The notes beneath the pieces are model-generated. The model saw only the letters and a list, made by a program, of their open reading frames with translations, did not search any database and was not told the DNA's origin. DNA of 43,517 nt. Origin: Syncephalis fuscata S228. Taxonomy: Eukaryota > Fungi > Zoopagomycota. The position numbers and the translations under genes were made by a program. Location: the NCBI GenBank assembly GCA_025786725.1, contig JAHLTZ010000076.1, forward strand, positions 1 to 43,517, in the 5' to 3' direction. Below, piece by piece: positions 11,308 through 17,526 of this stretch (positions within the stretch are counted from its first letter, which is position 1; each line of letters begins with the position of its first letter).

Positions 11308-13098
11308 ATGCGTCTTTTGCTTAATCGTTTACGTCGTACTATGACCAGCCATACACCTTTCTCGGCACGTTCGCCGGCGCTGCACTTTGAGATTGTCGCA
11401 AAATGTCCTACCACAAAAGCACGAGTTTCCCGGCTGCATTTACCGCATTTTGTCGCTGACACGCCCATGTTTATGCCAGTGGGCACACAGGGTACTATGA
11501 AAGGTTTGACAACGCAGCAGCTGGAGGATCTTGACTGCCACGTTATTCTCGGCAACACTTATCATCTGGTAAGTATATAGAATAGAGCTGTAATCATATT
11601 TACTAATATCGATCGATTACTTGTAGGGTAATCGACCAGTAAGTATAGCCACGCTACAATCAACTGCAATTACATATTGCACTCTAGGGACAAGAACTTC
11701 TAGACGAAGCACAAGGTTTACACAAATTTATGAATTGGAGTAGAGGCTTATTAACGGCAAGTTATGGAAAATATGTAAATTAACATAGCGCTTACAAATA
11801 TTACTACAGGATAGTGGTGGCTTTCAAATGGTTTCATTGCTTAAATTAGCCGAAATTACAGAGGCAAGTTTACGTAGATAGTTGGTATTTATAGACATTG
11901 ACAAGAGTGCCTATATAGAAAGGTGTAGAGTTTGAGGCACCTCACGATGGATCCCGCATGTTGTTAACGCCAGAGAAGTCAATTGATTTGCAAAACTCAA
12001 TCGGTGCGGATATTATGATGCAATTGGACGACGTGGTCTCTTCGCTTACCACTGGACCGCGTCTTGAGGAAGCAATGTTGCGATCTATTCGCTGGTAAGG
12101 CTTAGTAATGTCCTATAGGTACGTAAAGACTAATTGATTGATGGACATATATATTCTAACAGGCTTGATCGTTGCATTGATGCACATAAACGTCCTAATG
12201 AACAAAATCTATTTGCCATTATCCAAGGTGGATTAATGCCAGAATTACGACGCACTTGTATTGATGGTAATTAATTAATTAATTAAACAATAGATGGCTG
12301 TAACTACCATGATTTAATTAAATGTGATTAGAAATGGTAAAACGCGATTTACCCGGCTATGCCATTGGTGGATTAAGTGGTGGTGAAGAAAAAGATCAGT
12401 TTTGGAGGATGTAAGCAATTCAAATCAGCAACATTCATATTGTAACATTGTATGTAGAGTTACACTGTGTACAGATCTACTACCAGAGGATAAGCCACGC
12501 TACTGTATGGGAGTCGGGTAAGTGATGCCAATGGATTACAGTAATGCTTACTCGTGTCGTAAAGCTACGCCGAGGATCTTGTTGTTTGTTCCGCACTTGG
12601 CGTCGATATGTATGATTGTGGTACGTTGTAAATGATATAAAGATAAAAATATAGACTGATATAGTATTATATTAGTATTTCCTACACGTACTGCAGTAAG
12701 TATAAAAATAGAGACAATAAGAATAAACAGAAAAATGACTAACTGGTTTATTGAAGCGATTTGGCAATGCACTCACTGCATACGGACCCATGGTACTCCG
12801 CCAGACACAGTATGAACATGACTTCCGTCCTATCGAAGAAGACTGCGATTGTTTAACATGCAAAGGCTACACACGAGCCTATCTGCATACCTTGGTTACT
12901 AGAGAAACAGTAGGCTGCCATCTAGTGTCAATTCACAATATTAGCTATCAAATGCGACTGATGCGCGGTATTCGAGAAAGTATCGTTGCGGGTACATTCC
13001 CTGAATTTGTGCGCACATTTATGCGAAATCGCTTTGGAGATGGCAATACGCCTGAATGGATAGTAAACGCGCTGAAAAGTGTTAATGTTGAGCTTTAA
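11308..13098 (+). CDS. QTRT1: Queuine tRNA-ribosyltransferase catalytic subunit (eukaryotic TGT), ~11 exons including 12- and 20-nt micro-exons
   Basis: [76 protein letters not shown] and Zn site CDCLTC..YTRAYLH. Confidence 0.96.
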
Positions 13099-13123
13099 CA
13101 TTAGAATAAACAATAATGCTTAT

Positions 13124-13851
13124 TTATTCGGTAGTTGATGTATAGGAATAAACATATAAACGTATAGGTAAACATGCTTTTTCGTTGAATATAACATATT
13201 CATCGTAGTTCAGTTCACACTTTCCGGCTTCACCATGTGAGCTGTGAAAGCCAGCGGTAGGCTGTGCGTTGCAACTCGATACTAATGGCTTATAGGTACG
13301 GCCAAGTATGACGCTGACTAAGAACAGACCTCGTACCTGTCGTGAAGAGTCTTTATGCAATGCTTGCGCCTGTAGTAATTGTAGTGCACTAGGTGTTATT
13401 TTCATGCTTTAAATAATTAAATACTTACCCCAGTTCCTGCATAGAAATGGCATTTTGATGCATGCGGGGAAAAGTAGATGCCATGTCCCAATCGTTGCCA
13501 TTTTGTCGGTCGATGATTTTTCCAACGCATTCCATTTTAAACGATTGTTTAACAATGCTGCAACCTTCACAGTCTTTTCGACATAATCTTGCTGTGGACT
13601 TTGTGGTAAAGTTGCATTCAAAATGCGTCCCGTGAAACAGTTGCATTTTATTGATTTCTTTCGTACTCAGCTCGTCTTCCAATAACTTTTCATAACTTTT
13701 ATGGTTGTTTATTAGCGTAGGATTGTGATTAATATTGAATATACGCTCCACACGCAAATCTTCACGTTATCCTTTGTCCAAGCAGTCATAATAATTGTTC
13801 CGCTTCCGAGAATTCCTTACTGCTACAATTTAATTCTTTTAGATATGGCAT
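13124..13851 (-). CDS. PARP-like (ARTD-type) ADP-ribosyltransferase catalytic-domain protein 'ART-A' with H-Y-E triad; intron 13370-13428; three single-base breaks (~13790, ~13767, ~13519)
   Basis: Reconstructed MPYLKELNCSSKEFSEAEQLFMTAWTK...LRVERIF...QLFHGT...CRKDCEGCSIVKQSF...WQRLGHGIYFSPHASKCHFY...LFLVSVILGR...GFHSSHG...LNYDEYVIFNEKACLPIRLYVY. All PARP signature segments are in order; the GHGIYF motif lies in a frame not shown in the track. Confidence 0.85.
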
Positions 13852-14520
13852 GATGACATGAAAATGTTTAATGACCAATAATTCAATGGTTTATTGCATA
13901 ATAAACAAACTTTAAATATATGATTGATTTTATATACAATTTATCAATTTAATGGTTGATATTGTCTGAACAAGATAGTTTTATTGGCACTAATAATCAG
14001 CCACTGTTCATTATCAGTTTAACCTCACATGACACTCCACTTTGCTTATAAATTATTGATTTATGGTAAATTATTTGTTTAATTAGCACGCTAATGGCCA
14101 CATCATGCTAATAATAGCAAAGTATTGATTAAAACAGTATTAAAATAAGGCTATTAACAATAATCCAAGAATACTATTTGTATTATTTTGCTTATTTACT
14201 TCATTTATCAATGCAAATAGCTATTTTTTAATATTATATCACAATTCATCAGTATTAAATCAGTAGTATACTTTATCAATCAGTTAATTTTTCACTACAG
14301 ACTACAACTTGGAATTTATATTAATTAATTAATATTCGATCTGCAATATCTTTATTACTTTTTATATTGTTTTTTAATTTGCTATTAAAGGGTGGCTATC
14401 ATGATCGACGCAGCAATTCATTGGATAAAAAATAATGTTATATTCAAAATTCAGATTAAATTACCATATGACATTTTCTGGCTAAAAACCGGCCACTCAT
14501 TTCTAGCTAGTAAAAAGACA

Positions 14521-15479
14521 ATGGTAGCGTTGATTTTGACTAAAAACAAAAGCTGGATGAATTGCGCCCGCTTTTCAATGATTACCAAATAAACACTCAA
14601 TATGTTAGTATTTTTAATGCAGTCGAAAAAGCTGACAAGCTTTTACGTAATGGTTTTCATCAGCTATTGCTGTTTATCCAACCAAATGCCAGATCTTTCA
14701 ATAAGTCTTGGATAGATTTTATTATCCAGTTTCGCCATGAATTTGACTCAACCACGGCGCCCATTTACCTTGTTCTTCATAAGGGACTAACCATTCAGTT
14801 TATAATAATTGGATAAAAAACGTAAATAACATAGACAGTTTTTATAATAACACCTCTAGCGTTACCATAACCTATGGCGACATTGACATTTTCAATGCTA
14901 TTCAACACCACTATAAGGTTGGTTGTCAAGAAAATAGACTGCAATAGTAAAGCTGACATGCTAATAGATGCAAAAAGAAGGCACAATTAATTTTTATAAC
15001 CGAGGGGAGCCTTATTACGAATTTACCAACTTTTATTCATCAGACATAAAAATTGACGATAAGCATTGGCCAACAACCGAACACTACTGTAAGTCATATA
15101 TGCAATTAGATGATATACACCAATTTATATAAATGTAGTTCAAGCACAGAAATTCAAAATCAATTCGCCAGTATTCAATCGTATTCAAAATGCACCATTT
15201 GCACGTGCTGCATTTTCTATTGCACGCAGCTATGATTATTTAAAACGATGGGATTGGGAAGAAAAGAAGGAGAATATTATGTTAACTGCTTTACGTGCAA
15301 AATTTCAACAAAACCCAATACTCCTTCGAAAACTACTGGCTACTGGAAATAGAAGATTAGTTGAACACACATACAATGACAAATACTGGGGCGATGGCGG
15401 CAATGGAAGTGGAAGAAATCGTCTTGGAGAGCTATTGATGTTTGTACGTAAAGAGCTGCAGCAGCATCAATTCCACTAA
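14521..15479 (+). CDS. NADAR/YbiA-family N-glycosidase (core 14968-15479, intron 15089-15138) with probable ~135-aa N-terminal extension (intron 14918-14967; -1 breaks at ~14544 and ~14784)
   Basis: Core INFY...EFTNFY...IDDKHWPTTEHY-FQAQKF...DWEEKKENIMLTALRAKFQQN...LLATG...LVEHTYNDKYWGDGGNGSGRNRLGELLMFVR is the COG3236/NADAR consensus. An upstream exon splices in frame onto MQKEG. The start codon is uncertain (14401, 14521 or 14968). Confidence 0.88.
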
Positions 15480-15690
15480 TACTACATTGTTATCACTCCT
15501 ATCAATATTGGTTTATTATTACTCCTAGTGATTAGCGTTATTCATTGCTATTGCTTTCAATATAAATCTACCCGACATTTTAATAAAAACAAATATGATT
15601 GCACACGTAATTTAACAAATAAAATAATTCCAATCATACTTTTACTAAGTAAACGAAGTGTTGCTGTCAACATGAACGATCAATATTTAA

Positions 15691-16284
15691 TTATTGCTTT
15701 TCAAAATAAGATCTGCGAATTCTTTCGCGTTCTTCGTACGAGACGCCATCAAATGATCCGCGTATGCTACCACCTGTATAGTCGTATACCCACATGGTGC
15801 TTCCAATAGCTGCTGCCGCGCCAAACATCACGGGAAAAGAGCGAGCTAGAGATTTATGAATCCGCAGTCAATTGTCAAATCATTCTGCTATGAACACAAG
15901 TATTATACGCGTTACTTACCTAGAAGACCAAGCATGGCACCGGCAGCAGCGCCGGCAGTACCAGAACTCCAATGATCTTGTTTTTGACGGAAATTGCTCA
16001 TCAAACAGTAGGTGGCGCTATAGGTGACGCCAGCAAAGCCTTGGTAGGTATACTGTTAGATGCCAACAGCAATTAAAGGTGCGATCTAACTTACCGAATG
16101 CCTTAACAGAACTGCTGGTTTTTGTAAATACGCTGGCCGCGTTAAATTGATGCGTTTGATACGCGTTGGCCACCGTACTGTAGATGACGCCAGCTAATGC
16201 AGAGCCTGCACCGATCTTGACGGTGTCGCCAATGCAATCGGCAGGTTTATAGTGGGATTCATCGTGGCCGTGCACCTCGCTCAT
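15691..16284 (-). CDS. NDUFA11: Complex I accessory subunit NDUFA11 (B14.7 / 21.3-kDa, Tim17-like), 3 exons
   Basis: HYKPADCIGDTVKIGAGSALAG...AASVFTK...AF-GFAGVTYSATYCLMSNFRQKQDHWSSGTAGAAAGAMLGLL-ARSFPVMFG...YDYTGGSIRG...EERERIRRSYFEKQ*. Confidence 0.85.
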
Positions 16285-16583
16285 GGTGGATACGATATTT
16301 TACTGATAAAGAAGAGGTGATATCAAAAGAGAAAAGGATGGAATCGACAGGGTGAGTATGAACTGGCTCTAGTATGACTATTGTTGTTACCTAAATTGAT
16401 AATTCTTTGATAAACTAGACATCTACTGAGCCTGTAATAAATTTATTACAGTAAGGCTTGATATATGTCTGCCGGCATTGATATATGGCCAAAAGCTATA
16501 AAATACATTGATTTATAAATGTTTCCTACTATCCCGCTTGTATATCGTATAGCACCAAACAATTATTGTTGTATTTTTCAAAA

Positions 16584-17526
16584 ATGCTTGTTAAAGGCGA
16601 TATAGCACTTGTTAACAATATAATCGCTAAAATACAGAATAGCGAAGGTCCACCGTCTTGCATTTTTCCTAGCTGTTCTCGCCCACGTCTTGTAGAAAAC
16701 AAAAAGATCCATATGTTCTGTTCCAATAGTTGTCGTGTATTATGGACATACACACTTGATCATTCCACGTTATTACTCAGCAAATACAATAGCCAAATTG
16801 CGCTATGTCGTAACCAAGGATGTAACTTGCCATGTTATAAAAAGGCAGGTACTAATCTGGAATACAGCTATTGTGGCCGTAACTGTGGTATCAAGGATAT
16901 GAATCGTGAGGAAGGACCACGGCTTTTATGTCTAGCTCAAAACAGCGCTGATTTTATGCGAGTATGGAAAAAGTTCAATAGTACAATGAATCTGAAAACT
17001 ATTGCTACAATTTATCGTATTTACATGCCCAAGACTGTTCGTGAACAATACGGTGATGCTCTAGGGAAGCACGATGTAAATTGTGCTACTGTGGAATATT
17101 TTCACGGCACAATTTACTATGATAACGGCATTTCTACACATAACAGCAGCAATATATGTGATGCCATTGGCTGCAGAGTTTGCGGGATTATAAAGAATGG
17201 TCTATTAATTAGCTGCGCTGTTTCTGGTAAGTAATCCGCTTTTATTAATAGTGTCAATATTAACATGAATGATTATAGGTCCTCGTATCTGGCTAGCCAA
17301 AAAAGCAACTATATCCAGTGGGTATGCGCGGAATACAACACTCAAATCTATGTTTTTGTGCAGTGTAGTGGCCAGCGCTATTACTCCTACTACCGAAACT
17401 GATGTTATCACAGTAGATCAACAACAGGTAGCTATATTGATTAATATCATCGAGTAACATTGCTGATGTCTAATTTATTTCAACTATTAGACTATCCTTC
17501 CAAAGTTTCTAATCTACTATCAATAG
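16584..17526 (+). CDS. Second PARP-like protein 'ART-B': two N-terminal Cys4 (Zn-finger-like) repeats plus an ART domain lacking the catalytic Glu; introns 17227-17278 and 17428-17490
   Basis: Repeats CIFPSCSRP...FCSNSC and CRNQGCNLP...YCGRNC; then IYRI, YFHGT, CDAIGCRVCGIIKNG, GPRIWLA...SSGY, SMFLCSVV, DVITVDQQQ-TILPKFLIYYQ*. The reading frame is intact. Confidence 0.78.

Follow-up and report, generated by a model that had tools for sequence, protein, structure and literature searches.

A divergent pair of PARP-like ADP-ribosyltransferase and NADAR genes in early-diverging fungi, candidate writer and eraser of one ADP-ribose mark

Why does a gene for a small PARP-like ADP-ribosyltransferase (ART) lie head-to-head with a gene for a NADAR hydrolase in a fungus? 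The question is raised by Syncephalis fuscata S228, a mycoparasite of the Zoopagales (Zoopagomycota). The stretch analysed here (the window, 43,517 nt) is the entire contig C346 of an assembly of 29.4 Mb in 371 contigs; its DNA is AT-rich (30-40% G+C) and its genes have short introns. In this order, it carries the transferase gene ART-A on the minus strand, a divergently transcribed NADAR gene on the plus strand, NDUFA11 on the minus strand and a second PARP-like gene, ART-B, on the plus strand. A sequence-only reading of this DNA had placed all four genes where we find them and had proposed a toxin/antidote or antiviral module that was not known as a gene cluster in fungi. ART-NADAR pairs are already known in bacteria and phages. 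The literature that we searched holds no description of a eukaryotic or fungal pair, an earlier passing mention being possible. Our analysis makes it probable, if far from certain, that ART-A and NADAR form an ancient divergent pair in early-diverging fungi, the former writing and the latter erasing a single ADP-ribose mark. They are a strong candidate for the first eukaryotic writer/eraser pair of NADAR-reversible ADP-ribosylation.

Linkage of the ART-A and NADAR genes across two phyla

The divergent ART-A/NADAR pair was recovered in all eight species with enough flanking sequence, namely S. fuscata, Thamnocephalis sphaerospora and six Glomeromycota; contigs too short to judge linkage (L007, L008, L010-12, L015 and L021-23) were left out. 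In S. fuscata the layout is head-to-head, as the sequence-only reading had it, with 549-611 nt between the start of ART-A and the ATG of the NADAR extension; the NADAR core lies about 1.1-1.2 kb away. Elsewhere the transferase gene faces a head-to-head PF08719 (NADAR) gene across 241 nt in Diversispora epigaea (L019), 376 nt in Geosiphon pyriformis (L018), 417 nt in Acaulospora morrowiae (L013), 421 nt in Gigaspora rosea (L020), 469 nt in Racocetra persica (L014) and 667 nt in both assemblies of Rhizophagus irregularis (L016, L017), while in T. sphaerospora (L009) the gap to the NADAR core is 1.2 kb.

The remaining neighbours differ in every species (QTRT1/NDUFA11; zf-UBR/kinase; HMG-box; methyltransferase/IBR protein; rhomboid/kinases). 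As no other microsynteny survives at such a distance, the pair appears to be held together by selection. The NADAR genes of S. fuscata, Geosiphon, Diversispora and Thamnocephalis share an intron position after ..TEHY and a near-identical exon 1, and are thus taken to be orthologous. Our data support the conclusion that the linkage of ART and NADAR is not a local accident. The sequence-only reading had named a lack of linkage in related genomes as fatal to its proposal; the pair is instead found in both Zoopagomycota and Glomeromycota.

The transferase, the hydrolase and a third gene

The pieces and exons of S. fuscata ART-A and NADAR were searched singly, and intact orthologues were used for folding. 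The ART-A family is rare, as only ten proteins came back when 1.84 billion representative proteins were scanned in full with a 113-aa piece of ART-A. With the Acaulospora protein (P0009) as query, relatives from Diversispora, Rhizophagus, Ambispora, Geosiphon, Glomus, Gigaspora and Racocetra were added; the family alignment (A1) found few proteins as a word-indexed query. A motif scan of 185,579 prokaryotic species, of limited sensitivity, gave no relatives. Most fungal species yielded a single syntenic copy, while a second family protein came from each of Ambispora gerdemannii and R. irregularis. The nearest Atlas clusters to both ART-A-type proteins and ART-B consist of uncharacterised fungal PF00644 proteins of 250-400 aa, mostly from Basidiomycota.

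Members of the family share the pattern E..F...W.K.N...LRVE, (L/Y)(F/Y)HGT..C, C-x4-C-x2-C and (F/W)QRLGxGxYF..SSK.H.Y, followed by G(Y/F)(H/D)S, LNY(E/D)EY and the C-terminus YSYTSTxE, and mean column identity across phyla is about 49%. Among 15 family sequences Y146 and E223 of the catalytic H-Y-E triad are invariant and H83 is nearly so. Two of the four cysteines of an insert directly after HGT are likewise invariant and the other two nearly invariant, and QRLGxGxYF and SK.H.Y are conserved too. This insert, which probably binds zinc, occupies the place of the donor loop of other PARPs, where the structural model is least confident. The description of ART-A as a bare catalytic domain in the sequence-only reading therefore needs amending, the more so as the Glomeromycota proteins carry an extra N-terminal C-x4-C..LC-x2-H motif. 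Inspection of full-length relatives revealed no signal peptide. In two large proteins, P0003 (6273 aa) and P0005 (1743 aa), the HGT and Cys-rich part of ART-A was matched in 6 and 9 stretches, respectively, which suggests that the Cys-rich module occurs elsewhere as a repeat.

The orthologues P0008 and P0009 match the PARP catalytic profile PF00644 with 40.1 and 33.1 bits (cut-off 26.7). An AlphaFold2 (AF2) model of the T. sphaerospora orthologue (pLDDT 79, pTM 0.82), searched against the PDB with Foldseek, has the ART domains of tankyrase 1/2 and PARP4 as its top matches (E about 1e-13, TM up to 0.80 by target). Membership of the DarT (DUF4433) family was considered and rejected: PARP was the sole Pfam family matched, and the top structural matches were all eukaryotic PARPs. 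By sequence and predicted fold, the ART-A family is thus a genuine ART of the PARP superfamily rather than a DarT, with predicted transfer activity.

In S. fuscata itself, ART-A is spread over stop-free minus-strand pieces whose frames alternate, between 13124 and 13851; they contain LFHGT, a Cys-rich stretch, GHGIYFSPHASKCHFY and LNYDEY. The three motifs singled out by the sequence-only reading (LFHGT, GHGIYF..SKCHFY and LNYDEY) are all present, and with them the H-Y-E triad. Three pieces match PF00644 weakly when taken alone (12.6-15.1 bits) but are collinear on the model: 13522-13757 falls on positions 23-59, 13429-13521 on 68-102 and the third match on 171-190. Against a hidden Markov model (HMM) of the orthologues, the same two pieces cover positions 72-154 (E 2e-26) and 154-184 (E 2e-14), and the last exon positions 186-266 (E 2e-30); orthologues of the second piece read GKNRRxTKWQRLG. 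The open frame of Syncephalis pseudoplumigaleata breaks at the same point as the predicted ART-A intron, after ..GTG.

The main NADAR exon matches PF08719 with 90.3 bits (E 2e-25; cut-off 35.1; 88.8 bits in the genome scan), and the closest solved structure is E. coli YbiA (2B3W; E 8e-23, 50-55% alike), which bears out the earlier remark that the core looks YbiA-like. With residue roles as in PMC11543638 and PMC11125620, ..TEHY and (F)QAQKF reproduce across the intron the E-x6-K spacing of E88 and K95 in E. coli C7 NADAR, and LVEHT aligns to LVEHT of YbiA, so that the last strand bears Glu and not Asp. The protein is, by its sequence, a YbiA-type PF08719 member that keeps its catalytic residues, and hydrolase activity is predicted. 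A weak second NADAR-like match in the genome (C329:65769-66050, L002:1486-1800; 33 bits) has one internal TGA and reads ..RDDWEQVKEDIMEQAVLTKYTQ..; possibly this is another NADAR gene, interrupted by an intron or broken.

Upstream of the core, the S. fuscata gene has an extension of about 170 codons, in stop-free stretches of 67, 90 and 54 codons in DNA of 30% G+C. A 50-nt GT..AG intron (14918-14967, with a CTGAC branch-like site) links it in frame to the NADAR ATG at 14968. The extension has no family match, and nothing was found between it and the open reading frame upstream of the T. sphaerospora NADAR by tblastn, HMM or hhalign; a by-eye alignment of the S. fuscata and other extensions was withdrawn after null results with these three methods. 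The Glomeromycota NADARs are 487-718 aa long. The conserved part of their extension holds an invariant NCWxNxW and is predicted to adopt a five-stranded flavodoxin/CheY-like fold, for which structure searches gave generic matches only (TM 0.4-0.55, none specific). In Geosiphon the extension and NADAR exon 1 lie in a single open frame, which shows the fusion to be real. Behind the catalytic domain, the Glomeromycota NADARs also have a conserved C-terminal tail, ..[RK]W[IFL][IV].EL.EL.. (L013:5323-5796, L016:5242-5736, L018:5213-5695, L019:5611-6099 and L020:5581-6024), which the S. fuscata and T. sphaerospora proteins lack.

ART-B is the third gene of the cluster. The piece used here is 100% identical to the hypothetical protein BDF19DRAFT_426775 of S. 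fuscata at NCBI, and combines two C-x4-C-x14-16-(F/Y)C(S/G)xxC repeats with a PARP-like domain (FHGT, CRVCGII, IWLAKK, TDVITV) that matches the ART family HMM with E 2e-9. As a word-indexed homologue query it found only itself. The site keeps the His, and the sequence-only reading was right to call it Glu-less: Val stands at the Glu column, and Trp replaces the Tyr of the triad besides. Reading the site as H-Y-D was tried and rejected, since the spacing to a conserved Pro aligns the Asp with the variable E/D that precedes the catalytic Glu. In A. morrowiae a second PARP-like gene lies directly downstream of NADAR and on the same strand as it, encoding three C-x4-C-x15-(F/Y)C(S/G)xxC repeats with YHGT, CGVCGII, MWFAKS and TDYIIV. 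This protein is an orthologue of ART-B: the two match over their full length with the same architecture (BLASTP E 1e-14), and both miss about 30 residues before the catalytic strand, have Trp for Tyr and have Val or Tyr for Glu. No ART-B-type gene was found within 8 kb of the pair in the other six species. These observations suggest that ART-A <-> NADAR -> ART-B is an ancestral three-gene order that has mostly been dispersed; the order is seen in two cases, one per phylum, and is weaker evidence than that for the pair. Elsewhere in the S. fuscata genome, two apparently identical genes (C3:26360-26653 and C328:826704-826997; L005, L006) have the ART-B Cys4 repeat and the region that follows it (29% identity, E 2e-10), and may represent a paralogue on two contigs or a duplicated region of the assembly.

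Frame breaks, proposed function and rival explanations

As the sequence-only reading had noted, the S. fuscata genes call for five single-base repairs. All five breaks do exist in the assembly: ART-A has three, near 13790, 13760 and 13520, and the NADAR extension has two, near 14545 and 14785. To follow the family pattern, each of them needs exactly one added base, and in-frame stops are absent from every piece; the N-terminus of ART-A fits E..F...W.K.N...LRVE at the right spacing only with one base added per break. Transcript evidence comes from one public run, in which 54% of the sampled words of the stretch were found. We take this run to be RNA-derived because its contigs show canonical splice joints in NDUFA11 and ART-B exactly as modelled, and we call these contigs RNA-like; ART-B has a depth of 12 and is expressed. 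In the last exon of ART-A, three single letters missing from the assembly are present in an RNA-like contig, after 13254, 13260 and 13284; with them ART-A reads KPSSIELQRTALPSGFHSS rather than KPLVSSCNAQPTAGFHSS, in agreement with KPSTMELERLCPPPGYHSS of the S. pseudoplumigaleata orthologue. As these bases restore the conserved reading, the assembly does drop bases in ART-A. The other differences between RNA-like contigs and assembly are G>A at 13406 and T>C at 14467; over about 2.4 kb of NDUFA11 and ART-B there are none, and the assembly errors seem locally clustered. Given the uniform one-base correction, the lack of stops and the missing bases seen in RNA, the frame breaks are probably assembly errors.

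What could such a pair do? The data establish the identity of the domains, the conservation of the catalytic residues and of the linkage, and the transcription and splicing of ART-B; co-regulation, substrate and reversal are what we infer, as follows. The writer would be a compact mono-ADP-ribosyltransferase of the PARP superfamily (240-290 aa) with an H-Y-E triad, a four-Cys insert and the C-terminus YSYTSTxE. The eraser would be an N-terminally extended YbiA-type NADAR N-glycohydrolase (catalytic Glu, Lys and last-strand Glu), with an extension that is flavodoxin-like in Glomeromycota. A common intergenic region of 0.25-1.2 kb may co-regulate the two genes. The substrate could be a nucleobase in DNA or RNA, ADP-ribosylated by the ART and restored by NADAR. 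The proposed division of labour is drawn from the activities described in the literature and the conserved linkage, and a nucleobase appears the likeliest substrate because NADARs are known to cleave only N-glycosidic ADP-ribose-base bonds and ribosyl-amine metabolites. ART-B, a paralogue with FCS-like Cys4 repeats and a remodelled site (His, Trp, Val/Tyr), may be an occasional member, perhaps a reader or targeting factor.

NADARs hydrolyse ADP-ribosylated guanine, and all four NADAR families act on ADP-ribosylated cytosine too (PMC11543638, PMC11125620, PMC12945103); eukaryotic NADARs are active on both (PMC11543638, PMC12945103). A YbiA-type NADAR cleaves ADP-ribosylguanine and neutralises YarT, an H-Y-[E/D/Q] ART (PMC11125620). 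The YbiA-like core, which the sequence-only reading had entered as a caveat, is thus real, while its force as an argument against reversal is weakened. On the side of the writers, human PARP10 can ADP-ribosylate uracil bases (PMC13036486). Endogenous ADP-ribosylation of G or C in eukaryotes 'has not yet been discovered' (PMC12945103), and according to a 2026 review no fungal NADAR has been identified.

Among known systems, the YarT-YbiA pair of myxobacteria (PMC11125620) likewise joins a small H-Y-[E/D/Q] ART to a YbiA NADAR with a last-strand Glu. It is a bacterial operon, whereas the fungal genes are divergent and intron-bearing, the fungal ART combines a complete PARP-type fold with a four-Cys insert, and its NADAR partner bears N-terminal extensions. 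DarT1-NADAR (DarTG1; PMC11543638) combines an ARTD-clade transferase with a NADAR eraser in reversible base ADP-ribosylation, as predicted for the fungal pair. However, DarT1 is a member of the separate DarT (DUF4433) family, and the NADAR beside it, of BC4488 type, has a catalytic Asp, while the fungal ART is PARP-like (tankyrase/PARP4 fold) and the fungal NADAR YbiA-type. Compared with the ART-NADAR toxin-antitoxin systems in general, the fungal genes show the genetic linkage and lack the co-directional operon of prokaryotes and phages. PARP10/TARG1 (PMC13036486) provides a eukaryotic parallel, with a PARP-family mono-ART acting on a nucleobase and a dedicated reversing hydrolase, which is what we predict for the fungal pair; there the eraser is a macrodomain, the genes are unlinked and PARP10 has H-Y-I in place of the H-Y-E of ART-A. 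Small PARP-domain proteins of fungi, notably Basidiomycota, and the clade-6 fPARP2 (PMC13720257) also place Cys-rich zinc motifs beside an ART domain, although fPARP2 is large and multidomain, with RWD and E2 domains, in contrast to the compact ART-A. The tankyrase and PARP4 domains share the H-Y-E triad with ART-A at 17-20% identity, and ART-A differs from these proteins in having no ankyrin, SAM or accessory domains and a zinc-type insert right after HGT.

NADARs are widespread in eukaryotes and remove ADP-ribose from guanine and cytosine in vitro, yet no eukaryotic maker of G- or C-ADP-ribose marks is known, and a pair locked head-to-head over several hundred million years provides a concrete candidate writer and eraser. 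T. sphaerospora offers a copy without introns and the experimentally tractable R. irregularis further copies, which makes the question directly testable. ART-A would bring the fungal ART types to five, its four-Cys insert at the donor-loop position being unusual. A bolder proposal, which we put forward tentatively and regard as doubtful, is that a cassette predating the split of Zoopagomycota and Glomeromycota is the first endogenous eukaryotic system for writing and erasing ADP-ribose on G or C bases of DNA or RNA, made up of a PARP-like H-Y-E writer, a NADAR eraser sharing its promoter and an ancestral ART-B-type third member bearing FCS-like zinc fingers. If true, this would identify the missing eukaryotic writer for the NADAR family.

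Several observations weigh against an ancient writer and eraser. Proteins are the usual targets of PARP-family enzymes. Of the eight linked species, six are Glomeromycota, so that independent support comes from about two to three lineages, not eight (essentially Glomeromycota, including the deep Geosiphon branch, and two families of Zoopagales), and a Zoopagales-like metagenome contig has no NADAR in its 1.3 kb upstream of ART, a flank too short to decide. The S. fuscata and Glomeromycota NADAR extensions have no similarity detectable by tblastn, HMM or hhalign. NADAR could be the housekeeping YbiA of this fungus, whose genome offers just one further NADAR-like match, a weak one. In the RNA-like run, ART-A and NADAR are thinly covered (depth 2-7) by strandless contigs, among them low-depth contigs over 14258-14559 in the region of the NADAR extension. 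The sole contig over the predicted ART-A intron (13050-13521) is unspliced there and joined to the highly expressed convergent gene QTRT1, which leaves both expression and splicing of ART-A putative. Finally, RNA-like contigs match the genome on both sides of two ART-A breaks yet end exactly there: a contig of 238 nt covers 13522-13759, from one inferred break to the next, without differences, and the neighbouring contig of 1556 nt stops at 13521 with two unaligned letters. A read-through poly(A) site of QTRT1 and read heterogeneity are possibilities for these ends. They would also suit decaying pseudogenes with real breaks in ART-A and the NADAR extension, a local relic in S. fuscata even if the pair is functional elsewhere, as would the very low expression and the crowding of five breaks into 1.1 kb with none in NDUFA11 or ART-B. 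We regard such decay as quite unlikely, for every break is mended in the same way, by one added base, in-frame stops are lacking, RNA supplies three further omitted bases that restore the conserved reading, and ART-A retains all its catalytic and invariant residues.

It is also conceivable that the two genes are conserved neighbours without common chemistry, sharing a bidirectional promoter that selection or chance has maintained, with NADAR as a housekeeping YbiA/COG3236 N-glycosidase for the destruction of reactive riboflavin-pathway intermediates and the ART, like most PARPs, as a modifier of proteins. The NADAR core is indeed closest to E. coli YbiA, which has an established role in controlling riboflavin intermediates (cited in PMC11543638), it is the sole strong NADAR in the genome, and the closest folds to the ART are protein-modifying PARPs. 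We nonetheless consider this unlikely: between the two phyla every other neighbour has changed and only the ART/NADAR pair persists, the ART-linked NADARs have extra domains that a metabolite hydrolase would not need, and YbiA-type enzymes cleave ADP-ribosylguanine, one of them being an ART antitoxin (PMC11125620). In a conflict module, the ART would poison nucleic acids, either an invader's or the cell's own in an abortive or incompatibility response, and NADAR would protect self, as in DarT1-NADAR and YarT-YbiA. Such a module would share the two-component logic of those bacterial pairs (PMC11543638, PMC11125620). The fungi in question are coenocytic symbionts and parasites in which mycoviruses are known (the survey in PMC7482067 includes S. 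fuscata), and the ART is of small size and varies at its N-terminus. Fast and patchy evolution is usual for conflict genes, however, and the strong conservation of the ART across phyla, its mostly single syntenic copy, the divergent transcription in place of an operon, the lack of bacterial or archaeal relatives in the motif scan and the lack of any mobile-element or duplication signature around the pair in the fetched loci make such a module improbable. Of the sequence-only reading, the linkage has therefore stood up by recurring in other genomes, while its toxin/antidote or antiviral interpretation finds no support in a strongly conserved ART whose full-length relatives show no signal peptide. 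The conservation, the lack of mobility signs and the mostly single syntenic copy in the fetched loci argue for an endogenous regulatory, repair or safeguard role of the writer and eraser over that of an arms-race toxin, although these roles are not mutually exclusive. The slow and vertical evolution of the pair suits an endogenous reversible modification, of a housekeeping or regulatory kind, better than a toxin/antidote weapon.

Feature coordinates and neighbouring genes

Table 1. Features of the ART-A/NADAR/ART-B locus of S. fuscata, in positions of the window.
Feature	Position	Strand	Remarks
ART-A last exon	13124..13369	minus	stop 13124-13126; ..VRGLFLVSVILG.., GFHSSHGEAG, LNYDEY (catalytic Glu), tail YSYTSTTE
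ART-A predicted intron	13370..13428	minus	GTAAGT...CAG, 59 nt; alternative in-frame acceptor at 13337; from sequence reading
ART-A Tyr piece	13429..13521	minus	..TKWQRLGHGIYFSPHASKCHFYAGTG (triad Tyr); one frame off from upstream piece; break at or near A5 run 13517-13521
ART-A His piece	13522..13757	minus	LRVERIFNINH...LFHGT (triad His) and Cys-rich insert C..C-x4-C-x2-C
ART-A N-terminal part	13758..13851	minus	two further frames: MPYLKELNCSSKEFSEAEQLL from ATG 13851, then ..MTAWTKDNVK; breaks near 13790, 13760
ART-A/NADAR shared intergenic region	13852..14400		candidate bidirectional promoter, putative function from recurrent head-to-head layout
NADAR N-terminal extension	14401..14917	plus	three successive frames (breaks near 14545, 14785); ends ..IQHHYK at GT donor
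NADAR exon	14968..15088	plus	..INFYNRGEPYYEFTNF..WPTTEHY (catalytic Glu); PF08719 positions 2-46
NADAR intron	15089..15138	plus	50 nt, between ..TEHY and (F)QAQKF
NADAR main exon	15139..15479	plus	(F)QAQKF (catalytic Lys) ... LVEHTYNDKYWGDGG..NRLG (YbiA-type Glu); stop 15477-15479
NDUFA11 (complex I B14.7)	15691..16284	minus	introns 15846-15919, 16039-16093; splice joints in RNA-like contig, depth ~2200
ART-B	16584..17526	plus	exons 16584-17225, 17278-17425, 17489-17526; NCBI BDF19DRAFT_426775; both introns in RNA-like contig

The features of the locus are collected in Table 1. NDUFA11, between NADAR and ART-B, is an unrelated housekeeping gene, and it is not in the ART/NADAR neighbourhood of the other species compared. 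In Rhizophagus irregularis two HMG-box genes (L016:9605-10504 and 12815-13903) flank the ART gene, and in Racocetra persica an open reading frame matching Cas12f1-like_TNB (TnpB/Fanzor-like; L014:312-626) lies about 7 kb from the pair.

On the other side of ART-A in S. fuscata, the tRNA-guanine transglycosylase gene QTRT1 (PF01702; window 11958-13098) lies tail-to-tail with it, the stop of ART-A being at 13124. QTRT1 also converges on the ART gene in S. pseudoplumigaleata and in the Zoopagales-like metagenome contig (L007:805-2665; L008:2200-3054), and does not do so in T. sphaerospora or in Glomeromycota. This adjacency is probably a synteny of the lineage, and guanine in RNA could be a common concern of QTRT1 and the ART.

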